A stretch of DNA of 64,000 nt from Pelomyxa schiedti (lineage: Eukaryota; Protista; Evosea), in NCBI GenBank assembly GCA_020536535.1, contig JAHLWZ010000602.1, forward strand, positions 1-64,000, written 5' to 3'. Positions 1 through 57,824 of the stretch are shown in pieces (the first letter of the stretch is position 1; the number at the start of each line of letters is the position of its first letter). The position numbers were made by a program, and so were the translations under genes. The notes beneath the pieces are model-generated. The model saw nothing but the letters and a program-made list of their open reading frames with translations, was not told the origin of the DNA and did no database searches.

Positions 1-100
1 GCACAAAGGACCACCATCCGCTCGTACTCCAAACTTTCGTGGTTCAAGCCACAACCGCAATCAAATACTTTATTACTGAATGAAAGATCATGAGCCAACT

Positions 101-612
101 TCATTCATTATCTTGGGGGAGATGCATCTCCAGAGGGGGGTTGCACAAAGCATTGAGAGAGTCAAACACAACCCAAGCTGTTGGTTGGAGACTGGGACCA
201 GTTGCCACGCACTTGTTGATCAGACTCACCAACTGGGGTGGTGTTCCACGAGCGGTGCATAGAAAGCATCGTGTGAGTAATCGTCAACTGAGAGGTATTC
301 TGAAATCAGCCTTCAAAAGAGGCACAGGGTATTCCACATACAATAGGTCTGGCTTTGTTTCTTCATTCTCGAGAATGACACCTGATTGTTCCAGGTCAGG
401 TGATGCTTTGTGGTGAAAGGGATCACTCACCTTGGAGCAGAGACTCCTGACCAAGATGTAGGTTAAGCACACCACCCACTGTTTCTGGAGAGGCCTCACT
501 GCAAGTACAAAAACTTTGTGAGACTCTCCAAAACCTCACCTGTGATGATGCGGCCATCAACAACTTTTGCACTGTGAATGCACGTGTTTTCTGGTTCTGC
601 ATACTTCAACAC
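101..612 (-). pseudogene. Collapsed relic of the dynamin-like GTPase/pseudokinase family
   Basis: Contains family pieces in order: LKYAEPENTCIHSAKVVDGRIITGEVLESLTKF, VEYPVPLLKA, a trace of the SVDDY segment, and the C-terminus TARGTPPQLVSLINKCVATGPSLQPTAW...PLEMHLPQDNE*. About 2 kb of intervening sequence is missing, with stops and frameshifts. Confidence 0.85.
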
Positions 613-929
613 TGTTTCCTTCAGTGGGAAACTGCTCCAAAAAGAGAACAAAGAGGCACAAAGTATTTTATTCATCTTGGAATGGATGGATACATTTGGG
701 TGTGTTTGTGTTTGTGTTGAGGTTTTTGTATATTTATTTATAGAAATGAGGTGAACTCGGTGTGCATTTATAAAGGATTCCAAAGTCAAGGGAAAGGTAT
801 TGGGTATCTCGATGATCTTTCTGTGAACTTGATTTCCGAACTTGGTAAGTGATGACTCAGCCTCTGAGTCTCCAGTCTCGAGTCTTTCGAGTGTGCCTTC
901 TGCACAGTTTGCCTGTGTGTTCGCAGAAT

Positions 930-1110
930 CACACAACACACAGATTCTGGCAGTGCAACGGGAGAATGTGCTGCCAAAAGGAGAGTGATGCTGTGGTAAG
1001 GTGAGGCTGTGAGTGAGCAGACTCAAAATCTCCAGAGGATTGTGGAACTGAAATTTTTCTGGTTCCAAAAGGATTGTGGAACAAAAGAATGGGTTCTTTT
1101 CTCTTTGCAA
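930..1110 (-). pseudogene. Degenerate fragment of the family GTPase G1-G2 region
   Basis: KEPI..., WQHILP and CTARICVL occur in shifted frames and match exons 2-3 of the intact copies. Confidence 0.55.
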
Positions 1111-1175
1111 TTAACAATCAGCCTCAGTAGCCTATGGCCATAATGGCGTGATTCACACATGGAACCAAGAGACAA

Positions 1176-4100
1176 TCATTCAGTGACTCCAGCCAAGATG
1201 TGTTCTCTCGTGCACAAAATCCCCTGCTTGGTAACTTCTTCTTCTTTCAGGATTTCTTCATCAGAGCAAGTGGACAATGCCGTGAGATTCCTGAAGACAG
1301 CCCCAGAAGCGGTGCAGATTTGTGCCAGTGCCGTGCAACATCGCCTTTGCTGAGTAGCCACAATCCAATGCAGAAGCTTATCTATGAATATTCCATGTGT
1401 CATCTTGCTGAATGCACTGGAGTACAAGAAATCGTGGGCACTCACACAACAAAAACAAGTGCACATCTTGAAATCTCTTGGAATGGCAAACGAATTTGTT
1501 GCTGGAGATTCCAGCATTTGTTTGAGATGCTTGTCATAGATTCTTAAAACAGCAGCCTCTGTTATCAGATTGGGAACTGTTCCATTCAGTTCATCTGCAA
1601 TATTTTTGATGTCAACACATGTGTTGGCAAAGAAAACAGCAGGTGAGTAATCATCAACTGAGAGGCCTTCTGAAGCTTTGGTCATGACTTCTTTCAGACT
1701 TGTCAAGGCACGCTGTTCCCTTATTTCAAATGCTGCTGTTGCAAAGCAGAAAACGACACCATGTGGATGGTAAGCTCCAAGGAGCGCAGGCATGAACGGG
1801 AAGATGATTGCACCCAAGGGATCACTTATTGCATGGCCAGGAAGGTCCACAAGTTCGATTCCAGCCTTCAGAAGGGGCACAGGGTATTCCACAACGATTA
1901 TTGTGTTAAATACGGTTCGCTTCGTTCCATCATTCTCCACACCTTATTTTTTCTGATCAGAGTGATGCTTCTTGATGAAAGGAAAGGGACCTGACCACAC
2001 ACCTTGGAGCAGAGACTTCTGACCAAGATGTAGGCTGAGCTTGCCACCCACTGTCTCTGGAGGGGGCTCACTGTCTGCAATGGGTGCCCCAGGCTCGCTG
2101 CGAGTGCAAAACTTCGTGAGACTTTCCAAAACATCACCTGCAACGATGTGGCCATCAACAACTTTTGCACTGCGAATGCAGGCATCCTCTGGCTCCGCAT
2201 ACTTCAAAAGACAGATTGTGGCAGTGCCATGCCCACTCCGGACTGGGAGGATGTGCTGACCACAAAGGGAGTTGATGAGTGATGACTTTCCTAAAATTGG
2301 AAAGGAAAAAGGTGAAAGAGTGAGGAGGGTTAAACAAGTTCAAGAGAGGAGGCTCTGCACACACCAGCACCAGTGGGGCCAAAGAAAGCAATCCGAACAG
2401 GATTCTTGCTGCACACACTCCTCACAAATTCCTGTTCCTGTTTTGGCATGAGATCACTCACTTCAGGGGGCAGCTCTTTTTGCAACATTTCATACCTGTA
2501 CGAAAAATAGATTTTTGAATGGGGTCCCATTTGAGTAAATTTAGAAGAGTGGGAAGCCACACAAACCTTTGGAAACACTCAGAAATTGCGGGAATTACTT
2601 GGTCTCGTATGGCAACAAGTGCCTTTGTGAGCTTATCGTGGTATGTGTCACTTGGGTTGCAGTGTCTGTTCACAAACCTCGACGCCATGACGTACTCAAG
2701 TGGTGGGCCTTCAGCTCTCGGCACCTCACAGTCCTCCAGTGAACAACCATCAACGACATCCCTCAGGAAAATAGTGGATGCTTCTAATGGGTGAGTTCCT
2801 TCTGTTGACAATGGGGACTGTGGAGTTGTTCTGGGTGGTGACCCTTGTTCTTGCTGTGCTGTTGACATTGTAGGGTAAAAAGTGTGGAGTTTTTGCTGAA
2901 GCATACACATGCAATTAGCCATGTTGCTGGGGTTGGTGTTGGGACAAATATGTCTCATCCATAATATAGTCAAAACAAGTTCAGGAAGGGTTGTTCTGTG
3001 CTGGTTGATGTTGGCTCTTGCAAAGTCCACATCTGTGTGTGTAAACGATGCCTTCCCTGTGAGAACTGCACTTATTCCCCTTTTTGTCACACTGGTGAGG
3101 CTGACAGTATGAATATAATATAGAAGCAATAAAGCTGGTGAGAACAAAGGCTCAACATCCAGAGCTTGGTGGAGAGTGTCAATACAATGTTTTTTTTGAT
3201 CATTACTCAGAATCTGGCAAAGTGCCTTCATTGTCAGTGCTCCTAAATATGTTCTTAAACGATATTTCAAAATAAGGTTTTTCAGCGATATGTTTACAAA
3301 CCCAACCTGCATCATTATTGGCTGCAGGGCCAATGAAAGTGTAAACTGAGAGCAGTTCACAAGGATTTGGCTCACTGACAAGTGTGACCAATACCTTGGA
3401 TGCCTCAACAAGAGACATCCTCGTTGCAGGGTCACACTGGAGCAGTGAATGGACCAAGTTGCAGAACTCCTTTGGAAACGCTGGTGGTCTCATTGGGAAG
3501 TCATCATCCTCGGTCCCAAATGAAAATGCAATCTGGCCTGAGGGACCATATTCCATTGGGTAGCCTGGCAATGGCTCTTGGCCACGCATTGCCAGTTCGA
3601 ATAAAATACATCCAAGTTCAAATGATGGTTGCTGGTAAGACTGGTCAATACTCAAGGCATGTATTTTGTATTGTGCACAATTTTTAAGGGATAGGTGCAC
3701 ACCTTGTCACATTGTAAAATTGGATTGTGACCCGGATGTTGTGTGTGTCGTGCAATTCCATTGAGAATCTCAGGGGCAAGGTGACTTCGATTCCCAACTC
3801 TGTCAAGGATGTGTGCCGTTTCTGCCTTGAATGAGCCATCTGAAAATTTCATTGCACATCCAAGGTCAATCAAGACAACTTGTTCTTTGTTCTGCATTTA
3901 AATGAATATCCAGCAGTGAGAATAGAGAAGAAACACACCAAAGAGACAACGATGTTGTCCAACTTCATGTCAAAGTGAATGGTCTGGTTCACAAAGAGAT
4001 GGTTCAGGCCCGCACAAATATCTCTGGAGTACTTGTGAACAATGCCCCAGGGTGTGGTTGCAGGAACAGAGGGGAGGTTTTTCAAAAAGTGGCCGAGGGT

Positions 4101-4766
4101 CTCGGCGTGATACTCCAGAACAACCCACACACATGCATGAAACCTCTTCCTCACTGGATCAAATGCTTGCTCCTTTGGAATTTCAGGGAGGTTCTCATAG
4201 TAATCGTGTGGGGGCCTATCTGTGAAGTGGCAGAAGTACTGATTCACATTTGGGTGAGGTGTAAGACTGGATGACACCAGATATTCATTCTTCCATCAAT
4301 GGGTAAAATGAACCAAAAGGAAAACTGACTGTGTCAACACACCTCAAAGGCATTTGCTACGTTGCTCGATTGAATACCCCGGTAATTGAACAGCGCCTTG
4401 AGCACATAAGACTGATCCCTGAAGAACTCAGGGTGACCCTCCCCAATGCACTTCACCTCGAACACAATCCCTTTCCTTTCAGGTTAGAAGGACAAAAAAG
4501 AGGTGCTTCCACGACGAAACAATACCGTTGGATCCATGAGCAATCGGCCTCACCATCCTGAAGTTCTGTGCCACGACGGCGCTCGATGCCGTTCGCTTCC
4601 AGACAATTTTGCTTGCAGATTGTGCGAGGCGCGTGAAGAACGCTGCGCGCTGGGTCACCACTCGCTCATACTCCTCGTACTCCACAACTCGGCTCCTAGC
4701 TACAAACTGTGGTTGCGGTGTTTGGGACTGTGGTTGCTGTGCTATGCATCCCATGTAGTTTCCCAT
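1176..4766 (-). CDS. Chimeric gene: PINK1-like protein kinase + helical linker + dynamin-like GTPase (copy A), C-terminally truncated
   Basis: Starts MGNYMGC. Spliced kinase motifs are IAHGSNGIVFEV, VLKALFNYRGIQSSN, PHPNV, HFDMKLDN, DLGC and GNRSHLAPE. After the intron at 3243-3306, the open exon runs into GPPLEYVMASRFVNRHCN (family exon 1), then GPTGAG/KS, DLPG and FFANT. It stops at TGA 1176, before the hairpin and pseudokinase. Confidence 0.75.
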
Positions 4767-5356
4767 TGGTAACCACTGGCAAACAGAAACAACAAAAAAA
4801 ACTGGGAATACCTCTCCTGAGGAAAACCACCTCGCGTTAAAAAAGTCCCCATTTTCCAGCCAGTCCGGACCGATCATCAGTTCTCAGAAAAAAAAGTAGT
4901 GTAGGTTAGCGGCATGTAGTCCAAAGCACAGGCACCACACACAAAACCTCACTATGGCATTCAACCCTTGTGCTACACCATGCAACACAACAGCACCTCC
5001 TCCACAAGTTGGTGGTAGGTCTGGTCCCCTTGACTCTGCTGTGATTGTTCCTATTTCATCACAAGACCACATCACGCCTATTGTAGTGTCGGACTCCCCC
5101 TCCAAGTCCTATTGCTGATACAATCTTGCCTGTATGTTCATCCACACTAAATGACCATGGAGTACCAACCCCCACATCTATTACCTCAACTAAACTAAAC
5201 ACCCACAACATGCTCTTTTTCTTTGCTGCAACAGGATAAAAAGGGGAGTGTGTAAAATCTTCTATTATGAGAGATGGTGACTTAGTTTTTGGCGAAGAGT
5301 AGCTGAGGGAGGGAAAACAGAGGAAGAAACAATGGTTTTCTTCCAAGTTTGGATAA

Positions 5357-8300
5357 TTAATGATCAGAAGATTTAGATGTTACCGGTGTCTGCTCGTCGG
5401 GGAGCATTTCAACACAGGAATCGCACATATCACAAAGACTTTGAACTACCACCCAAGCTGCTGGTCTCCGCTTGAGCTTAGTAACCACGCACTGGTTGAT
5501 CAGATTCACCAACTGGGGTGGCGTTCTGGGAGCGATGGGCAACTGAAGAGCAGTGGTCGTGGCGAGGCACCGCAGCAGTGTCGGCTTGGGTGTGAGCTCT
5601 GACAGAATCACCCCAAACGCAAATATGTCAACTTTTGGGGAGTCGGAAAGCCAGTTTGTATTTACACATGTACCGCTGTTGCCATCATCTGAGATGTCTC
5701 TGCCTTTGCTGCCTGTATCGTCACGGAAGCCGACCAGTGCAGCGGTCACCTTGTCACCTTCTGTGGTCACGACAACGTTCTCCAGCTTAAGATTGCCATA
5801 TACAGTGCCGTGGTGGTGCAGGTCCATGATAGCGGTGATTATGTCCTTGGCAATTACCAGTGCTTCAGAGAGCTTCATGGTGGATATGTGCTCCTCCAGG
5901 TAGGCCTTGAGCGTGAATTTGAACTGTGGGTACACCATGCTCCATACATTGGGCTGCTCTCTGTATACCGTTTGCAGCTTCAGAACATGGGTAGAGCACT
6001 GTGCCATTTGGCTCCAGTAATACAGGTTCTCAAAGAACGCACTCCGATATTCTTTGTTTCGGTTTTTCAGGTCAATAACCTTCACTTGAGTAGTCGTTGT
6101 GGTTGATTGTGATTCTGAGGCAGAAGTTGTGGTTTCCGGTGCCAGCGCACTTGTCATTCTGGGTTCCACTGAAGTAGTGGGAGCGTTGGTTTTGGCGTCG
6201 GTGCCGGTGTCGGTGTCGTCGGCTAATGCGTCGGTCCTCCACGCTGAAAACAACAGGTAGTCGTCGGTCACAGTAGCCGTTACACTGCTCGAAGTCGTAG
6301 AAGTAGCTACACTGCTACTGCTCGAAGTCGTAGTGGTTGTAGTTGTAGTAGTAGTCGCAGGGATGTCGGAGTCCACAGGGGTAACCTGGCTGTTGTTGTT
6401 TGGACATGGTGGCCCCGCAATGCATACCAATGTAGATGTTGCTGCAGATGACAATGAACTGGCTGAACTTTGGACTGGCCGCTCCCACAATATCTCGCCC
6501 CGTTTCTCAAGTGCCTCGGCATTCAGTGTTCCAAAAAGGAGACGCAGATCCTGCACATCTGCGGTATTCCCAGCACCCCAAGTTTTTTTCATTTTCTCTC
6601 TCTGAATACAGAGTGCTGTGACCTTATTTAGATATATCTGGAAATACTGAGTTGTACGTTCACGGCATACATATTCCAGTTCCTTTCGTTGTTTTTCTAC
6701 CTTGTCGCTGTCACATAGAGAGTCAAGCATGTGTTGTGCCACATTTTTTTTAAAGTCATTGCCAGTGAGATGTTCACCCGTGGCAGACATCACTGAGGCT
6801 CCTGTCACTCCTAAAAGTGAACACATACTTAGTCCAAGTGCCACTGCCAATGCCGCACTGGCTCCTCCAGTGAGCGGTACTGCAACAGCTGTTGCCAAAA
6901 ACGCAACAAATCCAAGACCAGTCAGACCCACTACACCCGCCAGGGCGAGTCGGTGCATCTTATGACCATAGGTAGGAGCTGCACCCCGGAGCAGCTTTCT
7001 CACGTCATTGTCTTCGATGTCCATAATTTGTTGACATACTGCTTTGACATCATCTTGGATTTGCTTCCGCATTGTAGTAATCACGGGATGAACCACGTTC
7101 ACTGTTAGCCAATGACCAAGCTCTTTGGTAAGATAGGTCTGGAATTGTTCTGTTTCTGAGGCCATCGACCTGGGGTTATACTCCAAGGGCAGAGAAATAG
7201 CTTTCCTAAAGAAGTCCTCTTGTGATTCCTGTACTTTCTGTTTTAGAAGATCCGGAAGCTTCTTTGTGTGTTCAGTGATTCTACCCAAGATGCCTGCTTT
7301 CGCGGCCTCAATCTTCTCACTGGCAGCTTTTCTTTTTGTTTCTATATCTCCAGGAGAGCAGGACAATACCGCAAGATTATTGAAGAAGGTCCCTGATGCC
7401 GCCGATATTTGTTCAAGTGCCTGACAGCACTGCCTCTGCTGAGCAGCAATTATCCAGTGCAAGAATTTGTTCATGAATGGCGCATGTGTCTGGTGCACGT
7501 TGTCGTAGAAGAGGTCGTGTGCACTCACACAACAAAAAGATGTGCAGGTTGCAAAATCTTTAGGAATGTTGAACCACCTGGTTGCTGGTGACTGAAGCAT
7601 CTGCTTGAGGTGCTCACCGTAAACTCTTGTAATAGCAGCCTCAGTTGGCCTGTTCCCGTGGAGCTCATCTGCTATTTTACGACGGTCAACACCGGTATTG
7701 GCAAAGAAAACCTCTGGTATGGATTCCTCTACCGAGAGGCCTTTTGAAGCCTGAAAAAGTAATTTTTCCAGACTTGTCAAAGCGTGCTGTTCATTTAATT
7801 CAAATGCCGCTGTTGAATAGCAGAAAACGACACCATGTGGACGGTAAGCTCCAAGGAACACAGGCATGAATTGAGAGATAGGTTTTCGAAACTGGTCACT
7901 CTTTGCATGGCCAGGCAGATCCACAAGTTCAATACCAGCCTTCAAAAGGGGCACAGGGTACTCCACAACGATGATTGTGGTCAATATTTCTCGCTTCCTT
8001 TCTTCATTCTCATCTCCTTTTTTCTTGTCAGAGTAAACTTTAAAGTGGCAGGGAACACACCTCGGAACAGAGAAGAGCGATCCAGGAATGGAAAAAGCTT
8101 GCCGCCTGCTGTTTCTGGAGGGCCCTCATTGTCATCATTTGGTGGGGGCTCATCAGCGCAAAACTGTGGAGGGCTCCCCAAAGCCTCACCTGCTCTTTTT
8201 GGAGGGGCCTCATTGCCATCATTTGGCGGGGGCTCATCAGTGCAAAACTTCGTGAGACGCTCCAAAATCTCACCTGGTACGATGCGGCCATCAACAACTT

Positions 8301-9023
8301 TCGCCGAGCGAATACAGGCATCTTCTGGCTTGGCATACTTCAACACACACACCCTGGCAGTGCAATGTCCACTCCTCGCTGGGAGAATGTAACACTTGAA
8401 AAGGGAGTTGATGAGAGTAGACTTTCCTGAAGGTTTAAAGGAGAAGTTGAGAGGTGTGACAACCAGAGAGGGCAGAGAGGGGTCTGCACACACCAGCACC
8501 AGTGGGTCCAAAGAAAGCAATTCGAATAGGCTCCTTGCTGCACACACTCTCCACAAATTTCTGGTCCTCTGGTGGCATGAGCTCACTCGCCTCTTTTGAC
8601 CCTAGTTTTGTTGCCAGCATTTGCTCCAGGAACTTATACCTTCGTTTTGGTGTTTTAGTTAATTTTTTCCCCCAAAAAAACTTTGCTCAAGTCAGACCTT
8701 CTGAAGCACTCGGAAATGACAGTCGCTTGTTCTTGAATGGCCGTGATGGAAGTTTTGAGCTTTTCGTGGACATCCTGACTGTTGCCTGCGTGAGCTGTCA
8801 CGAACCTCGAAGCAGCTTCGTACACTAGCGGTGGGCCTTCGGCAATGGCAACCCTTTTTTTATGACTGCCACTATCGGAACAAGTGACTGAGTGAGGTGT
8901 GTTGGTATGAGTTTCAGTACTTCCTGAATTGCCAGCAGTGGCGCTAACGGGGCTGGCACTGGGGGAGGTGTTGTTACTAGGAGGTGTTATTGGTGCTTTT
9001 TCTTTGGAGTGGGTGTTCCCCAT
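5357..9023 (-). CDS. Dynamin-like GTPase - hydrophobic hairpin - pseudokinase protein (copy B, intact, 4 exons)
   Basis: MGNTHS start; G1 GPTGAG/KST; G2 GHCTAR; G3 DLPG; hairpin ...AVPLTGGAS...; kinase fold with YGNLKLEN (no HRD Asp) and VGF (no DFG Asp). Three GT-AG introns restore the frame. Confidence 0.85.
8105..8249. repeat. Imperfect in-frame tandem duplication (period 84 nt) in the copy B GTPase domain
   Basis: FCTDEPPPNDGNEAPPKRAG versus FCADEPPPNDDNEGPPETAG. Confidence 0.85.
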
Positions 9024-9381
9024 TCGTGCACGACCACCTTAGCAAAAATGTGGCGAAGAAATGTTCTTCTGGCGCAACTAGGGTGATTCCGAGTGCTTGC
9101 TTTCTTTTTACACTGTAGATTCCCAGAAATCCCTCAGTTGATTAGAACTACAGGGAACACACTTTTTATTTTTTTGGGTCTTGCCAGGTCATGCTCCTCA
9201 GAGGCTGAAAAGACCACAAAACGGAATGTGCCTGGTCCAGATATTTCTGAATTTTCCCTTCACAGGGCACAGAGAACCAGGAGTTTTAACATTAAAGCGG
9301 TAAATTATTGTAGTAGGCTCGATGGCCTGGTCTATTTCATACACAGTAGTGCACCAGCCCGAAAATGGAAACAGCTATGCC

Positions 9382-12295
9382 TCATTCAGTATTGAGGGGG
9401 AGCATCTCCAGAGGGGTGTTGCACAAAACAACAAGTGCACCATGCACCTGGTGGGCTGTTGGTCGGAGATCAGGGTCAGTTGCCACGCACTGGTCGATCA
9501 GATTCACCAACTGGGGTGGTGTCCCACGAGCGGTGGGCAACTGAGGAGCAACGCCAGCGGTCGTGGCGAGGCACCGCCGCAGTGTCGGCTTGGGTGTGAG
9601 CTCTGACAGAATCACCCCAAACGCAAATATGTCATCCTTGGGGGTGCAGAAAAGCCGGTTGGAAGAAACGCAACTGTTGGTGCTGCTGGTATCATGACCT
9701 TCATCACCACCAAAATCTCCTGTGATGGTGCTGAATCCGGCAACTGCACAACGAACCATCTTGTTGTTTTCTGTGGTCACCACGATGGTCTCCAGCCTGA
9801 GATTGCTGTGAACAATCTTATGGTGGTGGAGGTCCCTGAGAGCAGCGATGACGTTCCTGGCTATAACCAGTACATCGGCAAGTGTCATGGTTAAAATGTG
9901 CCTCTCCAGGTGCTCCCTTAAGGAGTATGTGAACCGTGGGTACACAACGCACCATACGTCAGCCTGCTGCTGGAATACCATGTGCAGAGGGAGAATGTTC
10001 GAAGAGCGTGGTGCCATGTAGCTCCAGTGATGCAGGTCCTCAAAGAACTCCCTCTGTTCACTTTCGTTGCACTTACAAAGATCAACAACCTTCACAAAAA
10101 CGGGATTGCCTTCCAGAATGCCTTCTCGTATGCATGACTCCTTTGGATACAATGCAGGTGAGTTGATAAGGTCAGGTTGGTCTTGCAGCATCCGGCTCTG
10201 TATGTCAAGTGTCCTGGCGTAGAGTTGGCCAAATTTAAGACGCATCGACTGTATCTTGTCTCTAGGGCAAGTCTCTACTATCCTTTTGACTGTACCGCGG
10301 GTTGTCACTTGATTCTGACCTCCCTTGATGAGCTCTTCTACCCATCTGCTGGCCACTGTTTCCAGTTTCGCTCTTTGGGCTTCTAATTCTTTTGGTGCCC
10401 AAAGAACTGAGTCAAGCATTTGCTGTGCAGCCAGTTTTTTGAAGTCGTCGTCAGCATGTTTGGTTGCAAGTAAAGAATCAAAAAGATTCAGTGCTAAACT
10501 TCCTCCAGTTGCTGCAGAGCCCACTCCCATTCCTGCAAAACATAATCCAAGACTGGCTCCTGCAGTGAATGGTGCTACAACCATTCCAACGACGGCCACT
10601 GCACCAATACAAAGGAGACCCAGCGACGCAGTCAATACATATCTGTGCATTTTTGCATCATAACCAGCTGTGAGCTGCAACACATCGACATCTTCAGTGT
10701 CACTACGTCGGAAGTTTTTGTAAACAATTTTCTGTATTTGCCCACACACTTCATCTATCACAGGATGAGTCACATTCACTTTCAGCCAAGGACGAAGTTT
10801 GTCTAGAAGATAATACTCAGCTTGTTCTCTTTCTGTGGCGTGCAAGTTTGGCTCATACTTGAAGGGCAGAGAAACAGCTTCCCTCAGGAAGTCACCTTGT
10901 ACTTGCTGCACTTTCTGTTTCAGAAGAAACGGAAGCTGCTGTGTGCATTCAGTGATTTCAGCCAAGATGCTTTCTTTTGTGGACAAAAGTGTCTGCTTGG
11001 TAGCTTCTTCTTTCTGGATTTCTTCACAAAAAGTGGGCAATGCTGTGAGATTCCTGAAGAAGGCTCCTGAAGCGGTGCAGATTTGCGCAAGTGCCATGCA
11101 ACATCGCCTCTGCTGGGTGGCGACAATCCAGTGCAGAAGTTTGTCCATGAATAACCCATGTGTAAATTTGCTGGATGGTTTGTTGCACATTAAGTCGTGT
11201 GCACTCACACAACAAAAAGACATGCACTTCTGGAAATCATCTGGAATGGTGAACGATCTCGTTGCTGGTGACCGAAGCATCTGTTTGAGATGCCTGTCAT
11301 ATATTCTTAAAACAGCATCATCTGTTATCAGATTGGGATCTCCATTGAGCTCGTCAGCAATATTATTGATGCCAACACCTATGTTGGCAAAGAAAATGTC
11401 GGGTGTGTAATCATCAACTGAGAGGCCTTTTGAAGCTTCAGCAATTACTTCTTTTAGACTTGCCAAGGCCACCTTGGAGCAGGGCAGAACGATCCAGGTG
11501 GGGAAAAGGCTTGACAACCACTGTTCCTGGAGGGGTCAAGTTTGTGAGACTCTCCAAAACCTCACCGGTGACGATGCGGCCATCAACAACTTTCGCCGAG
11601 CGAATGCACGCGTTTTCTGGGTCCGCATACTTCAACACACAGATTCTGGCAGTGTTCTCTCCATCCTGCATCGGGAGAATGCGCTGCCCACAAAGGGAGT
11701 TGATGAGTGATGTTTCTCCTAAAATATGAAAGGTAAAAAAGAGAGGGAGCAAAAAGTTCAAGAGAAGAGGCTGCTCACCACCACCGTCAGTGGCGCCAAA
11801 GAAAGCAATTCGAACAGGCTCCTCTTTGCTGCACACACTACTTGCAAATTTATGTTGTTCCGACATGAGATGATTCCTTTCAGGGACCCCTGTCTCGGGT
11901 AGATCTTTCTGCAAACTCTCATACCTTTACGAAAAATAGGTTCCGTTTGAGTGAATTAGAAGAGTGGGAAACCAAACAAACCCTAGGAAGCAGTCAGAAA
12001 TTGCGGGGACGAAATGTTGACGGAAGGCATCGAGTGACTTCACGAGCTTCTCGAGGTGTGTGTCTCCTCTGTTGCAGTGTCTGTTCACGAACTTCGACGC
12101 CACAACGTAATCGAGCGAGTCACTTTCGGCGGTTGGAACCTCCTTTTTTGGATTTGCAAAAGTGCTGGTGCTTGGCGAGTTCGTTATGTTATCGGTAACA
12201 ACAATGGAGTTGACACAGGCCCCTGTGCTCGACGATTTTGCGGGTTCTGCTGGTGGAACTCGATTTCGGTTGGAAGCACTCTTGGTATTACCCAT
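9382..12295 (-). pseudogene. Family copy C with inactivated GTPase (possible pseudogene or GTPase-dead variant)
   Basis: MGNTKS start. G1 reads GATDGG/ET (Lys to Glu). About 290 nt including G3 DLPG are deleted at ~11470, with a frameshift. The downstream ~695 codons (stalk, APFTAGAS hairpin, HSN/AGF pseudokinase) are open. Confidence 0.7.
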
Positions 12296-13479
12296 TTCAT
12301 ATCTTTCGGGTGGAAGTTGTTTTCCCTCCAGTTCCTGTAAAAGCGCCCCATCAGAGTACCTTCCCTTTCCACACTCCAACAGGCGTGGTCCTGCTCCTTT
12401 GCCATTGTCAAGCACATGGTGTGAGTAAATACCTTGGTTGTTGGTGGAAACATGCGGCCTAAGTCCCCGGGCTTCGAGGAAAAAGATAGTAAAAAAAAAG
12501 CCGTTGTTACGGTGGTGACGGGTACGAGGAGAAGGCGGAAATGTGGCGACGAGCCATGACGGACAACATCTGCACTAACGGGTGTGGCAACACGGACATG
12601 TACAACAATGCACCAGCGGGTACCCTTGCCTGTTGCCGCTGTTGTATGGGCGTTACTGGTGTGTCTTGCTAGTGCCGGTGTTTTTTGGCGTTGCAGGTTG
12701 TTGCCTTCAGCTTTAGGTTTTTTCCTCCCTTTTTCGGTTTCCCTTTTTGTTTCCTTTTTCCTTTTCTTGTCAAACTCCTAGTAGCTTGTTTGAAATATAA
12801 CCAGCATTGAGTTATATCTGTACACTCTTGCAACATCGGGGCTTTCCCACAGAGCACCACTGAAATGGTCAGCAATCAAGCTTACTCTGGTTTCTGGGGC
12901 TCCTTTCCTTTTTCATGGATCTCTTGGGTGCGTCCTCAGCTAACTCCTCCCTTTCCAACTAACCTGACAAGCATGTGTGGATTCCAGTGGCGATTTTGGT
13001 ATGTCCTTCTCCTTTTTTTTCCTTTTCTGTTTTCCTTTTTCTCCTTTTTTTTTCCTTTCTCCTTTTTGATTGCTCTTGTTTTATTTTTTTTTCCGGTTTG
13101 TTGTCTAGAATTTCAGCTGGTATGTGACTTCTTCTCTCTTCGTCATCCCAGTTTCACTTTGTGTAAAAGGTAGTGACTTGCAGCAGCATATGGTCTGGCA
13201 TGCCCAGGAGAGTGGCTCAACTACACATGACCCCAGATTGATGAACTGGGCACAGCACTTCACCTCTACAATAACAACACCCTTTTACACTTGAACTGAC
13301 ACCAACGAAGAAATTTTTTTTTGGCAACTTTTCTTGTTGCATTCTCTTGGTGTAGCTCCTCCTATGAGATGATGCTCGGCCCAAACCACACAAACACAAA
13401 CCTTCATCAAAGGAGTCTGCCACCGAACCTCAGCCATGAGAAGTTTGGAAATTAGATTTATTTGAGGTTAGTGACACCC

Positions 13480-16400
13480 TTAGTCTTTCTCACCTGGTAC
13501 CATCTCAATGGGGGATTGGCACATTGAGCTGAGAGCTTCAAACAAAAGGCGGGCTGTAGGGCGTACATCAGGGTCAGTTGCCACACACTGGTTGATCAGA
13601 TTCACCAACTGGGGTGGTGTTCCACGAGCGGTGGGCAACTGAGGAGCAACGCCAGCGGTCGTGGCGAGGCACCGCCGCAGTGTCGGCTTGGGTGTGAGCT
13701 CTGACAGAATCACCCCAAACGCAAATATGTCAACCTTGGGGGTGCAGAAAAGCCGGTTCGCCGCCTCACTGCAACTGCCATCTTCTGTGATTGTGCTGAA
13801 TCCGGCAACTGCAACGTCGGTCACCTTGTTGCCTTCCACGGTCACCACGATGGTCTCCAGCCTGAGGTTGCTGTGTACAATGCTACCCTGGTGGAGGTCC
13901 TTGATAGTGCCAATGATTTCCCGGGCTATCACAAGTGCATCCTCCAGCCTCATGGTGGATATGTGCCTCTCCATGTGTTCCTTCAATGAGTATGTGAACC
14001 GCGGGTACACAACGCACCACAAGTTGGGTTGTTGTCTGAATACCATTTTCAACGGCAGCACGTGCTGTGAGCACTGCGTCATCTGGTGCCAGTGATGCAG
14101 GTCCTCAAAGAACTCCCTCTGTCCACTTTCGTTGCGCATAGGAAGATCAACAACCTTCACATAAACGGTGGTGTCGTTCCAAATGCCTTCCCGTGTGCAG
14201 TTGCCTTCGAGAGCAGCACATGGTGAAGAAGTGAGAGACGAACAAGGTGGGAGAAGGACTGGATTGTCATGCAGCATCATGTCCTCTGAAGCACGTATCC
14301 GGGCAATCAGTTTCCCGAATTTCCTACGCATCGTTGACCACTTTCCCAGCGCGGTTATCTTGTCTTCAGGGCAAGCATTTATCATTGTGAGTCTCTGTTT
14401 ACAGAGGTCACTCACGCGCAGCATACGTTGCGCTATGAACTCCGTGGCTCTTCCCCTGGCCATAGTTTCCAGCTTCACTCGTTGTGCTTCTACCTTTTCT
14501 CGTTCGCAGAGTGAATCAAGCATGCGTAGTGCCAAGTCCTTTTTAAATTCATCATCAACAGTGTAATTTATTTCAGGGTAAAGTGATGCTCCCAGAGTTC
14601 CTAAAGATGCAGTCACACTTGTTCCCAATCCGAATATTAGTAAACTGCCTCCTCCAGTGACAGGGGCGAGGAGAAGAGTGGCCAAAGTCGCACATATCGA
14701 AAGGCAAGTCAGACCTACCATGGCTGCTAGAGCGTGGCGCCGCATCGTCGCAACATAGTTAGGACCTGCATTCCACAACAAATCTCTCACATCTTCAGTT
14801 GTATCAAGTTGTTGAAGGTTTTCTTCAATACATTTCTGTATTTGAATACGCACTTTAGTTATGACGGGATGAATGACATTCACTTTCAGCCAATGAATGA
14901 GATTTTGCGTGAGATATGTTTCAGCTTGTTGTGTTTTTGAGACTCGGGAACTGGGATCATACTCAAAGGGTAGAGAAAGAGCTGTCCTCAAGAAGTGATC
15001 CCTAACACTCTGGATTTCTTCTTTCAGAATAAATGGGAGCTGCTGTGTGCATTGTGTTATATCAGCCAAGAGCCTTTCTTCTGTGCAATGAATCCTCTCT
15101 TCGGCAGTTTTTCTCATTTTCTGTATATCTTCACAAGAACATGTGCACAATGCTGTGAGGTTCCTGAAGAAGGTCCCAGAAGCTCTGCCGATTTGCTCAA
15201 GGGCTGTACAGCACCGCTTCTGTTCAGCAGCAATGATCCAGTGCAAAAATTTGTCCATGAATAACCCATGTGTAAATTTGCTGGATGGTTTGTTGCACAT
15301 TAAGTCGTGTGCACTCACACAACAAAAAGACATGCACTTCTGGAAATCATCTGGAATGGTGAACGATCTCGTTGCTGGTGACTGAAGCATCTTTTTGAGA
15401 TGCCTGTCATATATTCTTAAAATAGCAGCCTCTGTTATCAGATTGGGATCCCCATTCAGCTCTTCAGCAATATCATCGAAGTCAAAATGTGTGTTGGCAA
15501 AGAAAATGTCGGGTGTGTAATCATCAACTGAGAGGCCTTTTGAAGCTTCAGCAATTACTTCTTTCAGAGTTGTCAAAGCCCCTTCGTCCTGTTTACCAAA
15601 CTTTGCCGTTGCAAAGCAGAAAACTACACCATGTGGACGGTAATGTCTCAGGACCAAAGCAATGAATGGGAAGATGATTGCACCAAGGGAGTCACTTATT
15701 GCGTGGCCAGGCAAGTCCACAAGTTCGATGCCAGCCTTCAGAAGGGGCACAGGGTATTCCACAACGATTATTGTGGTCAATATGTCTCTCATCGTTTCTT
15801 CATTCTCGACACCTGATTTTTTCTCGTCAGGGTCAACAAAGAAACCTTTTTGGTGAAAGGAATCAGACACCTTGGAGCATAGCAGAACGATCCAGGTGGG
15901 GAAAAAGCTTGCCAGACACTGTTTCTGGAGGGGTCAAGTTTGTGAGACTCTCCAAAACCTCACCTGTGACGATATGGCCATCAACAACTTTCGCCGAGCG
16001 AATGCACGCGTTTTCTGGGTCCGCATACTTCAGCACACACACTCTGGCAGTGCAATGTCCATTCTGTACTTGAAGAATGTGCTGCCCACAAAGGGAGTTG
16101 ATGAGTGATGTTTTTCCTGAAAGAAGGTGAGAGTGAGACTGGGAGCAACAACAAGGGAAGTGGTTCTGCACACACCAACACCAGTGGGGCCGTAGGTAGC
16201 AATTCGAACAGGCTCCTCTTTGCTGCACGCCCTCCTCACGGACTCCTGGTCCTCGGGTGGCATGAGTGCACTCTCTTCAGGTATCATCATCATATCAGAA
16301 AGCTGTTTCTGCAAACTCTCATACCTTTAATTTATTAAATATTCGAGGTCTAGTTAAGAAGTGGAAAGCCAAACCGTCCAAAGTAATTGACAGGAATAAG

Positions 16401-16619
16401 TTGTTCGCGTACGGCGACGAGCGACTTTGCAAGCTTTTCGTGGTATGTGTCGCATGCGTTGGTGTGTTCCTTCACGAACCTCGACGCCACTACGTAATCG
16501 AGCGGTTTTACTTCCTTTGGTTTTGCTGTAGCACCAGTTGTGGGGGTGGAAGGGACAGCAGTGGGAGTTGTGGCAGGTTCTATTGGCGAAACTTGAGGCT
16601 TACCGGCGCTGATGCCCAT
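13480..16619 (-). CDS. Dynamin-like GTPase - hydrophobic hairpin - pseudokinase protein (copy D, intact, 4 exons)
   Basis: MGISAG start; GPTGVG/KT; GHCTAR; DLPG; FFANTHFD; LAPVTGGGSL hairpin; HSNLRLET and VAGF pseudokinase motifs. Introns lie at the same positions as in copies A, B and E. Confidence 0.88.
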
Positions 16620-51908: not shown

Positions 51909-54900
51909 ATGGGGAACACCTTCCAATCCAAGAGAGTACTACTTGAGGACGATGTGTCCGGCGATTCCCCATCCCACAAGCCGTGCGCGGCACCCGAGAC
52001 GGTTGTTGATTCCAGCCCTCGCCCCACAACTAGTGGCGACGACGGTAGCGTCAAAACTACTGTTACAAGTAACACGCCCTCACACACAGCGACTATTTCC
52101 CCAACAAGCCCGACGACAGCAACGCCTGCCACTGCCACTGCAACTTCGAATTCAACAACAGCTGCTACTGTTAATAATACGAACACACAAGCTCCATTGC
52201 CGTCCCCCCAGGCCATCGTAGTAGAAAGGCTTCTGCGAAGATACACTCACCCGGGTGACGATCACAACCAAAAGCTTGAGAAGACACTTGGGGGAATACG
52301 AACAGACGTGATGCCCAGGATTTCTGACTGCTTGAAAAGGTGTGGGTCTTTACTTTACCCGTAGTTTATTCTGATTTGAAATGTATGGTGTTATGTCTTG
52401 GCTTCAAAGATATAGAACCCTCCAAAACCGCTTGTCTCTCATTACAATGCCTGAGGAGGGTGGGTTGATGTCACTAGAAGCACAGAATTATGTACAGAGT
52501 GTATGTAATAAGGAAGATATCCGACTTGCTCTCTATGGTGCTACTGGTGCTGGTATGCAATAAACATCTCTAGTAGTTAGCTAGCTCCCTCAATGGGTTT
52601 TTTTTTCACCAGGAAAGTCTTCCCTCGTAAATTTCCTCTGTGGCTGGAAAATTCTTCCTATTAAGAGTGGTCACTGCACCGCCAGAGTGTGTTTGTTGAA
52701 GTATGCAGAACCTAAAGATGCTTGTATTCGAAGTGCCAGAGTTGTTGATGGAAAACTTGTCCCAGCTGATTTGTTTGTGAGCTTGGCCCCATATTGTGAC
52801 GAAGAACCAAACGAGACACAAAGAGCTGCTGTTAGGGACCTGCTCAAACTGTACCTTGATCGTCGTAATCTCCTCCCAGGCATGTTGAGCCCTTTTTAAG
52901 CATTTCGCAATACTAATGTTGCAAGTAGAGAACATTCAAGACTTATTAACCACTGTACTCATCGTGGAATACCCTATTGCATTCCTCAAGGCCGGCATAC
53001 AACTGGCTGACCTGCCAGGTGCGAGTAAAGGCGACCCTCTTGAACATATCTTATCTCCATTTCTGCCTTTGTTCTTGGCAGCCTTCCGTCCACATGGGCT
53101 TGGTTTTTGTTATGGGATAGCGGCTTTTGACAAGGCCGAGAATTTCGCCTGGAAGAAGCTAATGAAAGTGATGGTAGATTCAGATTCCTGGACACCCGTT
53201 TTCTTTGTCAACACCAGAACTGACCTGAAGGACCTTGCTGGAGAACTGGATATACCTTCAAAAGTGGTAACAGAGGCCCACCTCACCCGATTATGTGACC
53301 AGCGACTTGAACAATTACTCCAGGCACCCTCAATTACTCTTGATATTTTGTCCACTCAACTGGACTTTGAACCAGACACCTCTTTCTGCATAGTGGGTGC
53401 TCGGAATATGCTACCCAAGCGGGCCAAGTACATGTCGTATTACACTCTGTTCATGGACAGGTTTGTGCGCTGGATCGTTTCTATACAAATGAAGGCATGC
53501 TGTCGGGCACTAGAGCAACTGTCAGCAGCTTCAGGGAATTTCTTTCAGATTCTCATGGGTTTGTCAACCAGCTCGTGTGAAGATATCCAGAGAATGGAAG
53601 CTGATGCTAAAGAGAGAATTTTGCTCGTCAAAGCGAGGATCTTGACAGGAATTGACCAATGCACACAGGCTTTTCCCTCTCTTTTAGTACGCAAGGTCCA
53701 GGAACAACGGGATGCTTTCTTGAAGGAAGCTGTTTCTCTGTCTCCTGGCTCGGAAAGAGAACGAGCTGAAAAATATCTTGCTGAAAATCTACGAGAATGG
53801 CTGGAAGACAACGTGATCTCTTACGTGATTAAGGAAGTACACAGCCAAATACAGAAGTCCATTGAAGAAAATACTCGACAACTTCTGAACGTTAAAGATG
53901 AGAAGGTGAAAGATTTACTACGGAGTGCATTACCATACTTCAATGAGAAGGTCTACAGGCGCTCATTGGTAGCAGCAGTGGGCTTGTTTGGTGTCGCTGG
54001 CTGTAATGGCCGGCACCATGTGGGTTAAATACAAATGCGTCGATGATGATTTCAAAAGGAGTGTTGCACAAAGCATGCTTGACTCCCTCTGTGACCCAAA
54101 AAGGGTGGAGGCGCAGAGGTTAGAACTCCAAGCAGGAGCTAAGCACAAGGTGGAGGACTTCATTAGCAAACGCCTGAATGATGTTCGAATACTGTCTGCA
54201 CAGCGACAAAGAATGAAAAATTATCGTTCCCAGGAAAGTACTGAGTGGGACACTACATATTGGACAGGAATGCGTAGCGATTTTGGAAAGCTATTTGCTG
54301 AGACACTTCACATTCAGGACCTGCTGTTGGAAGACCCACCAGTCTTTCCAAGCCCCTCTGCTTCTTCCTCGCCAACTTCAACATTCTCGCCATGTTATTC
54401 TCCTCTGGAAAGATACAGGAAGGACTCATACCCACTGGAAGCCATTTGGAACAACCAAACTGTTTCTGTGAAGGTTGTTGATGTTTCAGAGGGCAGCAAA
54501 GACAATCCGGGGAAGTTCTTCGAGGATCTATATCACTGGCATAGAATGGCGCAGTGCTCGCCACATGTGCTGCCGCTGCATATGGTATTCAAGCAGACGG
54601 TATTCCGATGCAACACCCCTCTCTCGGAGAGTAGAGATATGAGGGGAGGAGGGAAGGAGCATACGAGCCAACAATCCGAGGTCTGGTGTGTGGTGTACCC
54701 ACAGTTCACATGCACACTCAATGACTTCTTGGAGAGGCACATATCCTCCATGCAGCTGATCGACGCACTGGAGATAGCCAAGACAATCATCACCGCGATC
54801 AGAGACATCCACGAATTCGGGACTGTACACGGAAACCTCAGGCTGGAAGCCGTGGTGGTAAATGCACAAGGCAGCAAAGTGACCGGCGTTGCAGTCGCCG

Positions 54901-55391
54901 GGTTCAGGACAAAAGCAGGAAGCAGCAATAACTCCACTGATAACCCCAATGACAATGGCGGTCGCAGCAGCAGCAGCAGCACCCGCGATGACGAGAACAA
55001 CACCTCATTCAGTTCCGCGAACCTGCTTTCTCGCGCAATGGACGACAGTTCCGCCGACCGGCTTTTCCACTCCCCGAAAGAACACGTCGACATACTCTCG
55101 TTTGGTAAGATTCTATCCGAGCTTACTCCCAAACCAAAGCTTCTGCGCTGTCACATGATCGGCGGCGATGAGACCACCGCCTGCACAGCGAGAGGTGGTT
55201 CTTCTGTTGTCACTGATGCTACTCTGCATTTGGTCACGGCGCGTGGCACTCCCCCTCAGGTGGTAAAGTTGATTAGCAGGTGTGTGAGCACAGAAGCCAG
55301 TCTTCGCCCTACGGCCCAGAAAGTAGTTAAGCGCCTTACCAACATTTGTGCATCCCCCATTGAGATGCTGGCACTGTTGGAAGAAGATTGA
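51909..55391 (+). CDS. Dynamin-like GTPase - pseudokinase family copy E, frameshifted in the hairpin (possible pseudogene)
   Basis: MGNTFQS; GATGAG/KS; GHCTAR; DLPG; FFVNTRTD; frameshift near 53990; HGNLRLEA and VAGF pseudokinase motifs. Confidence 0.78.
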
Positions 55392-55490: not shown

Positions 55491-57824
55491 ATGGACCCGT
55501 CAACGTCCCAGAATTCCCACGCGTTGCCAGTGTCATCGTGCGATCAGCAGTGCGCTCGCAGTGAGCACGTGCTGTCGGTGTCGCGGCTCGTCTGGGACTG
55601 CGTCGTGGTGCCCGGCTGGCTCGGCTCCGCCCCCAGCACCAAATACGAGGAACACGTGGACAGCCTCTACGGCGACGCGTCCTGGAAGAGGCACCTGCTG
55701 CGGCTGCTGCGCCTCGGCGAGGCCCTGTTCCCGCTAGCGGGGCTGTGCTGCCGCCGCGCCGCCGAGGACTGCCGCCGCGTCTGCGTTTCTCGTTACGCCC
55801 TCGTTGCCTTGGCAGCCGTGGCCCCGGCTCCTTCCTGCCTCGCCTGGGTCGTTAGGCACAACAGGAGCGGCGGAAGCGGAGGGAGCGACCGCGCGGGGGA
55901 GCATTATGGGAGGGAGTGGCGCTGGCAAGTGACGGTGAAGGAGGTGGCGTGGGTGATGTGGGGCCTCTGCTCTTCTGGGAACGAGAAGGCCCTGAGTCGC
56001 ATGTTTGGTAACGAACACGGCGGCACAGAAGGAACTTTCCCGGCATTATGGGACGGGCGCCGCATCCCGGAATGGGACGATGACATTTCTACTTCTAGCT
56101 CTGCAAGAAGCAAGGCTGTGCTATTGGACCAGGTTTGTGATTACGTGAAGCCTGTATTGGATCAGGCCTGCATGTCTGGGGATTTAAACACTGTGAAGTG
56201 GATCCTGGCTTCTTCGACGTTTGGAATTTCAAGGGACGAAGCACCTTGGAGGCTTCTTGGGCCTGTAAAGTTGGCTTTGACAAGAGGCCACACGGCTTTG
56301 GTGAAGTGGCTCTTTGATGAATATGAGCTTCTTGAAACCTATGAAACTCATTCAGAAGTACTACATGAACTGGCGACGTTATGTGCAGCCGGAGAGAACC
56401 CAGACTGTGTCAAGTGGGCAATCTTGGACTGGGTACTTCTAGACCCCTCGATTGATATCCTTTCAACAGTGTTGGTGAACGAGCATGCTTCCTTGGAACT
56501 GTGCCAATGGGTGCAAGAGAAATGGGCAGTAGGTCAGATCGTCAGTTCCTACACAATAGAATGCATCTCGAACCCTGAAATTGCAAAGTGGGCTCTGATA
56601 ACGCTGACTTGTGAATTTACCCACGTGGACTTGAGTGTGATGTGCGCAAGTGTTGGTTTGTCGTCATTTGCAGAATGGCTAATAGCTGAGAGGCAATTCG
56701 TACCAACCCCATCAACGTTTTTTATGGCGGGCTCTTGCAGAAGTGTAAAAGTTGAATTTCTACAGTGGCTTTCAACCAATGTTGCTCTGTCCCTCAAAGA
56801 CCTTATCCACACCCTAATTAACGCTTTGCTTTTGGGGAACACCATAGTTGCAGCTTGGTTGGATCAGAGGTTCCAGGTAATGGGTTCTTGTATCACCTCG
56901 TCACTAGACCCTTCTAAGAGTGTTGCATGTACCTGTCTAGATGAATTATGTTCTACAACCAACACGGAGGGACTGCAGTGGTTCCTCACCAATCTTACAC
57001 CAAAGGCACGATCAACGATCAGTTCGGATTGTGTATGCAAGGCAATTAACACCTCAATTAGTACATGGAATTACCCTGTTACAGAGATGCTACTGAAAGC
57101 CTTCCCACACTTTGTTCCTCAGACTTCAGTTCTAGAAAAGATTTTCATCGCTTTCATGAAATATGGTTTTTCCAAGCTGAAGTGGCTTGTTTCGTTCATT
57201 GATTACTCATCACTGTTGGCAATACAAGGCTTTGTGGCAAACTGCCTGTGCACCAAGAAATTCTTTCCATATTCAACCAAGGTTGTCAAGTGGATCATCA
57301 CACAGTTCCACGTTGGGCGTTCTAGTATCATGGTTTCTCACGGTCGCCTCCTTTTCCGCATGCTTCATCTACACAAAATGGCTGGTGCCAAGTGGCTCAT
57401 AGACACCTTCAAAATCTCATTTGCAGAGGTGGCCTAACTGTTATTCACTATTACTAAAAAATACCAGGTTATGAATATGTTTGACCACATGCTTCCATCT
57501 GCAGACTACTTCGATATCAACGTGGCAACCTGGAGGATGCTGCTGAACAAGTTCCCAGAAATCGACCTTCATACCATCAACAACCACATGATGCCCATTG
57601 TGGCCAGGTCACCATTCATAGCAACATTCACAATCAAAAGGTTTTGTAGGGACAGCACTGAGATTACTACTCTGCTTGATGCAGTTCGCCAGTACCATAC
57701 CGACAAACCAGAACCATCACCGACGTGTGAAGTGTTTCTATGGTTGGGAATGCAATTGCGGATCGACATTTCTTCAAACACAACCACGGTACTGTTTTTT
57801 GGCTCAAAACGTGGAACCACATAA
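55491..57824 (+). CDS. Hypothetical helical-repeat (degenerate ankyrin-like) protein
   Basis: 648-codon ORF with repeated A-C-x-x-G-x-L-x-x-V-K-W-type units, joined by a likely 39-nt intron (57429-57467) to the next in-frame ORF. Confidence 0.65.

Follow-up and report, generated by a model that had tools for sequence, protein, structure and literature searches.

The anaerobic amoeba Pelomyxa schiedti transcribes a PINK1-like kinase fused in frame to a mitofusin-like GTPase

Analysis of a 64,000-nucleotide (nt) stretch of the Pelomyxa schiedti genome (contig JAHLWZ010000602.1, positions 1 to 64,000, hereafter the window) identified a chimeric gene in which a PINK1-like kinase is joined in frame to a mitofusin-like GTPase. 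The chimera, carried on the minus strand at window 4766-1176, is a real, transcribed gene of P. schiedti and a lineage-specific gene fusion within two modular families. The original prediction of an in-frame kinase-GTPase chimera, made from the letters of the window, was confirmed by an open spliced frame, identity to a database protein, an exact junction, and complementary DNA (cDNA) across that junction. Its description as a domain-shuffling product also held, with both parent families, the junction, and the 3' breakpoint identified and a fused RNA in existence. Judged from its sequence, a functional chimera formed by two rearrangements within a tandem array is the reading favored here, with some reserve.

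The gene model comprised 10 exons separated by nine GT..AG introns (4525-4471, 4342-4290, 3938-3892, 3702-3632, 3306-3243, 2906-2859, 2566-2496, 2364-2291, and 2002-1943) and a 3048-nt open frame of 1015 codons plus TGA, reading from the ATG at 4766 to the TGA at 1178-1176. A HMMER search of 1.84 billion representative proteins with the unspliced junction frame (window 2569-3240, minus strand) retrieved a 1015-amino-acid (aa) database protein (P0001) at 100% identity, and the spliced model was identical to it residue for residue. This protein is the GenBank entry KAH3760483.1, “hypothetical protein Pelo_7644 [Pelomyxa schiedti].” Exact copies of it were sought on other contigs and none are on record. 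The unspliced DNA carried a 343-codon open frame at 3489-2461, far exceeding chance expectation.

According to the published genome study (PMC8887013), the P. schiedti assembly used amplified DNA of single cells with RNA reads for scaffolding, the transcriptomes came from Smart-seq2, and transcript data served to refine the gene models. Four of its public runs (X1-X4) were compared with window 1000-4900. The DNA runs X1 and X3 gave unspliced, independently built contigs over the junction (2269-3970 and 2269-3563), and a further X1 contig (1000-1232) spanned the 3' breakpoint; the DNA contigs of both runs had no letters differing from the window. Run X2 behaved as cDNA. One X2 contig of 1809 nt, extending from 3197 to 1136, skipped 2906-2859 and the three GTPase introns and joined the kinase extension, the junction, the whole GTPase half, the stop codon, and 40 nt past the stop. 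A second X2 contig of 1106 nt (approximately 4662 to 3331) skipped four kinase introns, such that eight of the nine introns were spliced in the cDNA contigs. Spliced RNA of the GTPase part was also present in X4, a separate sample. Misassembly, against which the original prediction had cautioned, was not displayed by the reads.

The kinase gene was originally described as having a 64-nt intron followed by one uninterrupted exon. The intron at 3306-3243 was supported by its position after ..NDAG, conserved in more than 30 paralogues, and by the deposited model, and the conserved extension behind it is reachable only with the 64 nt removed; it lies inside a hole in the cDNA that is weighed below. 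The exon that follows is interrupted by a 48-nt intron (2906-2859) seen in cDNA. This intron is in frame and removes 16 codons, and the database protein lacks it (query residues 1-224 aligning to protein residues 413-620). It is the sole splice between 2900 and 2750, a region where the original prediction allowed for transcripts spliced apart, and the cDNA continues beyond it. An independent GTPase start at MSTAQQ (approximately 2868) was rejected because its ATG falls inside this spliced intron and the surrounding stretch is kinase family linker; the segment MSTAQQ...DGCSLEDCE, previously taken for GTPase sequence, belongs to the variable linker of the kinase family. The 48-nt intron aligns with coding linker of paralogues (..NCIKLLQGKAST..), such that it may be coding sequence turned intron or an optional intron, and its retention would give a 1031-aa isoform.

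Residues 1-568 represent one member of a PINK1-like kinase family with at least 60 P. schiedti paralogues that normally end in Sel1 repeats. Pfam identified a Pkinase domain at residues 99-380 (65 bits); in the whole protein the Pkinase match came from this N-terminal kinase only and no Sel1 match was found. The kinase keeps the Gly loop, Lys105 in YVLK (4408-4391), the alpha-C Glu, HFDMKLDN (3977-3954), DLG (3867-3859), and APE (3783-3769), and the predicted retention of the beta3 Lys, the catalytic Asp, and DLG was borne out with all three located in the model and the database protein. The chimera begins MGNYMGC and a Met-Gly start is conserved across the kinase family, which may hint at N-myristoylation. 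Kinase exon 3 had 75 matches in the genome and the stretch behind the 64-nt intron had 61, every one just 3' of a kinase, and annotated kinase paralogues were found in P. schiedti only. These paralogues are generally built as a Met-Gly start and kinase, then a helical extension with a linker, and finally 5-12 Sel1 repeats. A tree of 19 paralogues placed the kinase half on an old lineage whose root-to-tip length was normal (0.41 compared to 0.39-0.47 in the nearest clade). A few family members, on other contigs, carried alternative tails, namely GNAT (P0006), ADP-ribosylglycohydrolase by GenBank name (P0014), and F-box plus ankyrin (P0003). These varied tails indicate that swapping of the C-terminal module is common in the family.

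Comparison to solved structures gave PINK1 as the best match for the single protein (E 2.6e-13; next NEK7 at 4e-7) as well as for the kinase family profile (E 9e-13; next GAK at 6e-9), a modest margin over these next kinases. The match takes in the HPN..F..FTD region with its N-lobe insertion and the GN..APE segment. The profile alignment ends at the end of the kinase domain, and the extension of the chimera is not detectably the C-terminal extension of PINK1. In contrast to PINK1, residues 1-77 (MGNYMGCIAQQPQ...) were seen by inspection to have no hydrophobic stretch and no N-terminal targeting or membrane segment, and the kinase half is one of at least 60 paralogous loci rather than a single orthologue. 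As judged from this copy number and the missing targeting segment, it is not a PINK1 orthologue and “PINK1-like” applies to the kinase domain alone. Among the closest known systems is the P. schiedti PINK1-like/Sel1 kinase family (e.g., KAH3761778.1), which has the Met-Gly start and the same six-exon layout. Identity between the kinase half and this family reached 61% over 575 residues and included the same extension and linker to ..EDCE. The chimera differs from it by having the GTPase in place of the 5-12 Sel1 repeats, and no Sel1 remnants were found in window 1-5400 by tblastn.

The GTPase half is a member of a family arrayed next door at window 5357-16619. Pfam placed Dynamin_N at residues 656-797 (51.7 bits, cut-off 27), and the best solved matches were mitofusin-1 (MFN1; 1.2e-5) and BDLP (1.2e-4), consistent with the mitofusin/BDLP branch of the dynamin superfamily and its dynamin-type G domain with motifs G1-G4. 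These motifs, including an intron-split G1 GPTGAGKS (2380-2283), G3 DLPGH (1847-1833), and G4 NTCVD (1625-1611), were conserved with the siblings, as was the switch-I Thr. The G domain is preceded by N-terminal helices and followed by approximately 85 residues of helices. Word searches with the GTPase half retrieved the siblings in P. schiedti and, beyond these, only weak bacterial dynamins. The copy closest to it (83% aa identity) is located on contig C882 and is full-length, beginning with an MGNTNT... start of its own and carrying both a hairpin and a pseudokinase. The chimera shares the exon 1 body, exon layout, and G1-G4 motifs with this copy and with the neighboring GTPase-hairpin-pseudokinase genes Pelo_7646 and Pelo_7647, yet it ends at ..ILAGVTE where the siblings go on for about 500 residues including the hairpin. 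Compared to the siblings, its GTPase half has no Met-Gly head of its own, complete helical stalk, membrane hairpin, or C-terminal kinase. The C-terminal kinases of the siblings are dead, with HSNLRLET for HRD..N and GFS for DFG.

Both breakpoints could be placed exactly. Kinase family protein homology extends through ...FLRDVVDGCSLEDCE (to LEDCE), past which the paralogues read KRMWSDQLTICT, an intron, ...LMLQALFEFEE..., and the Sel1 repeats. From EVPRAEGPPLEY onward the protein is homologous to the GTPase family, its counterparts being ..KKEVPTAES.. for sibling B and ..KKEVVIAEGPPLEY.. for the C882 copy. A single GAG codon at 2727-2725 (Glu568) is common to both parents at the switch, occurring as ..EDCE|KRMW.. 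in the kinase linker of paralogues and as ..KKE|VP/VV.. in GTPase exon 1 of siblings, and the junction is seamless and mid-exon for both parents. At the 3' end, DNA homology to the C882 copy and siblings stops exactly at 1177, where the third base of the next codon changes TGC to TGA and the C882 copy continues ITECTQQL.... This was in agreement with the predicted stop at 1176 at the point where siblings read ITECTQQL and with the loss of the hairpin and pseudokinase. The proposal that an active kinase had replaced the dead one did not fit the presence of two distinct breakpoints, one at 2727-2725 and the other at 1177; relative to the kinase family, what was replaced is the Sel1 tail.

The chimera would have originated by two rearrangements within the tandem array. 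A PINK1-like kinase cut in its linker would have been joined to exon 1 of a mitofusin-like GTPase copy, costing the kinase its Sel1 repeats and the GTPase its Met-Gly start and Ser/Thr/Pro-rich head. The simplest route would be one deletion from a kinase-Sel1 gene to a downstream, same-strand GTPase copy. At the second breakpoint the GTPase would have been cut past the post-G-domain helices, with loss of the hairpin, the dead kinase, and what remained of the stalk. A Sel1-repeat gene lacking a kinase lies at window 58078-59295 (plus strand), and its detectable family homology starts with the exon (GLHPRSQLLLQALFMLEEG...) located immediately after the segment missing from the chimera. A reciprocal inversion with this gene was considered and found unsupported as no GTPase 5' sequence was present upstream of it, a weak test with sibling 5' regions barely conserved.

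The GTPase half has been under purifying selection since the C882 split. Over 440 codons, comparison to the C882 copy gave a synonymous divergence (dS) of 0.38, a nonsynonymous divergence (dN) of 0.10, and a ratio (omega) of 0.27, figures that, as with the branch rates below, measure time since the duplications (C882 split) and not time since the fusion. With changes polarized by three siblings, the chimera branch had 52 nonsynonymous and 44 synonymous changes (omega approximately 0.35) and the C882 branch had 29 and 36 (omega approximately 0.24). The two branches did not differ significantly (p = 0.26) and the chimera branch was far under the neutral ratio (p = 4e-7). The low omega held throughout, from the N-terminal helices through the G core to the final 79 codons. 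A recent non-functional rearrangement, as offered in the original prediction, was not favored given the dS of 0.38 to the nearest copy and the departure from neutrality.

Both halves keep their catalytic motifs and a tentative mechanism for a functional chimera would be a lipid-anchored kinase aimed by G-domain pairing, a possibility of rather less than even weight that draws on analogy with related proteins. The Met-Gly start would lipid-anchor the active kinase at a membrane, and the G domain would take over the targeting or partner-binding role of the lost Sel1 repeats. Nucleotide-dependent pairing of G domains is usual in the dynamin superfamily. The G domain of the chimera would pair in this manner with those of full-length, membrane-inserted paralogues, so that an active kinase would be brought to partners with dead kinases of their own. 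Of similar standing, and likewise by analogy, GTP may gate the kinase intramolecularly in the manner of LRRK2. A single polypeptide containing both a GTPase and an active kinase is also found in the ROCO proteins such as LRRK2, and such a combination is common among the Amoebozoa; the chimera resembles these proteins in its predicted polypeptide. It differs in that its GTPase is dynamin-like rather than a Ras-like Roc, the domain order is reversed, and COR is lacking (no Pfam match to Roc or COR in the chimera). The suggestion that the chimera regulates the neighboring copies is pure inference.

Several points weigh against a functional chimera, including the time span covered by the selection figures. 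The protein is predicted from DNA and RNA sequence, and AlphaFold2 models of the kinase plus extension (9-row alignment; mean predicted local distance difference test score, pLDDT, 41.9) and of the GTPase half (6-row alignment; mean pLDDT 39.8) were too poor for fold comparison. The cut in the stalk could cripple a dynamin-type GTPase. Amino acid change was modestly faster on the chimera branch (38 compared to 22, p = 0.05). When the same fusion was sought among the 1.84 billion representative proteins with the junction-spanning piece, only Pelo_7644 covered both sides and all other matches were from P. schiedti, in a search blind to analogous fusions of unrelated sequence. This protein search found no second copy and no second species with the fusion. 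Finally, the gene is situated beside a decaying copy approximately 1.2 kb from the contig end. The truncated stalk, the unique architecture, and the modest excess of amino acid change would also fit a real transcript with no selected function, i.e., a neutral or mildly harmful by-product of array rearrangement and decay whose frame would be intact for the sole reason that fusion and truncation came much later than the duplication measured by the selection estimate. Decay in the surroundings agrees with this explanation, as the flanking copy is heavily deleted and interrupted by a repeat, sibling B has a degenerate P-loop (GGGETS) and has lost the G3 region, and a copy on contig C733 is broken. 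However, the 3048-nt open frame with nine canonical splice sites and correct cDNA splicing, the preservation of every catalytic motif in both halves, the branch omega of about 0.35 in all parts including the last 79 codons, and the normal kinase branch length for the family speak against it. On this evidence, a by-product is a serious minority possibility.

A further point against the functional chimera is that the cDNA hole (3198-3330) contains the 64-nt intron linking the kinase domain to the rest. If this intron were retained, the frame would stop at the TAA at 3205-3203, and two expression units can be envisaged in which a kinase mRNA ends at this stop and a separate transcript starting near 3197 could give no more than a GTPase-only protein begun at an internal Met (e.g., WMRHIC, residue 505). 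The breaks between cDNA contigs at 3331 and 3197, the latter 6 nt past the retained-intron stop, are as such units would leave them. Nevertheless, the hole resembles a coverage gap rather than two isoforms because the contig ends are not on splice sites, and the depths on its two sides are similar (7.6 and 10.7). In addition, about 60 paralogues conserve the protein sequence of the extension behind the intron, in each case immediately following the kinase. A transcript start at 3197 would fall inside this conserved coding exon, the first ATG past 3197 is out of frame and opens a frame of only about 22 codons, and transcript data went into the refinement of the deposited model (PMC8887013). Two units are accordingly quite improbable and a single transcript very probably crosses the kinase and GTPase halves. 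An artefact of assembly or whole-genome amplification could be suspected from the amplified single-cell DNA with RNA-read scaffolding (PMC8887013) and from the nearby contig end. It is scarcely credible given that two DNA runs and cDNA of a different library type show the same junction with no differing letters, and that the DNA and cDNA contigs likewise agree at the 3' breakpoint. The functional chimera remains the favored reading, and the features of the locus are given in Table 1.

Table 1. Features of the chimeric gene and its 3' flank in the window.
Feature	Position	Strand	Evidence
Whole chimeric coding region	1176..4766	-	Model identical to database protein Pelo_7644
Kinase exons 1-5 (4766-4526, 4470-4343, 4289-3939, 3891-3703, 3631-3307)	3307..4766	-	Pkinase match; introns spliced in cDNA
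64-nt intron, GT..AG, not a multiple of 3	3243..3306	-	Paralogue conservation; deposited model
Kinase-family helical extension and variable linker, residues 412-567, ending ...FLRDVVDGCSLEDC	2728..3242	-	Homology in about 60 paralogues; cDNA from 3197 on
In-frame 48-nt intron GTATGC..AG, containing the MSTAQQ ATG at 2868	2859..2906	-	Skipped in X2 cDNA contig; missing from Pelo_7644
Fusion junction, shared GAG = Glu568	2725..2727	-	DNA and protein comparison
GTPase half, residues 569-1015	1179..2724	-	Dynamin_N match; 83% aa identity to C882 copy; three introns spliced in cDNA
TGA stop at 3' rearrangement breakpoint	1176..1178	-	Crossed by DNA contig 1000-1232 and by cDNA contig reaching 1136
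Sequence with no other genome match, including a 3' untranslated end of about 40 nt seen in cDNA	959..1175	-	Genome comparison; cDNA
Decayed remnant of a further GTPase-pseudokinase copy, ending at the contig end	1..958	-	Homology to C882 copy

Downstream of the chimera, the 217 nt at 1175-959 had no other match in the genome, with the last part resembling the intron end of the decayed next copy. The remnant at 1-958 consists of ordered GTPase-pseudokinase pieces with large deletions that correspond to C882 3889-3913, 3908-4246, 4433-4481, and 6405-6658. It is broken by a dispersed repeat of approximately 325 bp (window 613-939) with at least 45 genome copies at 81-95% identity, and the flanks of this repeat overlap by 6 nt of C882-equivalent sequence that may be a target-site duplication. 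The stretch at window 1-257 matched the 3'-terminal part of the C882 gene (L039 6405-6658) at 96.5% identity, much closer than the rest of the remnant, and recent gene conversion or a contig end limited by repeats could account for this. The remnant was rejected as the missing tail of the chimera since their overlap is 71% identical compared to 81-96% between the remnant and other copies.

Further members of the GTPase family were identified in the window and on other contigs. Sibling B (Pelo_7646, P0019; window 9382-12148) has a spoiled P-loop (GATDGGGETS) and the whole G3 region is gone, such that its GTPase and kinase both look dead. On the minus strand of contig C733 (70000-79000, L040), a broken GTPase-pseudokinase gene (L040 approximately 7112-5414) is located about 200 nt upstream of the same-strand kinase-Sel1 gene P0008 (KAH3758834.1), and sibling A and the kinase half in the window have the same order as this pair. 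The chance expectation for such GTPase/kinase neighbors is approximately 0.1 (about 75 kinase loci in 52 Mb). A distant GTPase-kinase family member with approximately 41% identity was located on the opposite strand at window 52916-55391 (plus strand), followed by an ankyrin-like open reading frame (ORF) at 55491-57437. On contig C882, ORFs resembling a retroelement reverse transcriptase and RNase H (L039 379-1493), as judged by inspecting their translations, were observed about 1.7 kb upstream of the full-length GTPase copy.

The chimera unites a PINK1-like kinase and a mitofusin-like GTPase, two enzyme classes that cooperate as separate proteins in animals, where PINK1 is reported to phosphorylate Mfn2. 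Read as a Rosetta stone, and by analogy with the animal PINK1-mitofusin pathway, the fusion would mean that the PINK1-like kinase family and the mitofusin-like GTPase-pseudokinase family act in one membrane pathway, a reading considered unlikely. If it were true, the kinases would act on the GTPases in an echo of animal PINK1/mitofusin, with Pelo_7644 as a hard-wired version that supplies an active kinase to assemblies with dead kinases. The same-strand pair of a GTPase-pseudokinase gene and a downstream kinase-Sel1 gene on contig C733 would fit this reading. In contrast to the animal pathway, the amoeba has reduced mitochondria and both families expanded specifically within its lineage, and the parallel may be a coincidence. 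In the literature searched, no paper was found on Pelo_7644, the kinase-Sel1 family, the GTPase family, or a link between the two families, and the protein already in GenBank is named only “hypothetical.” The gene offers a clean case of the origin of a new multidomain enzyme in which both parents, both breakpoints, and the spliced RNA can be read from sequence. If functional, it would provide a testable hint on two gene families of this anaerobic amoeba that are large and undescribed, and would show in nature how a dynamin-type G domain can be put to new use as a kinase targeting or switching module.

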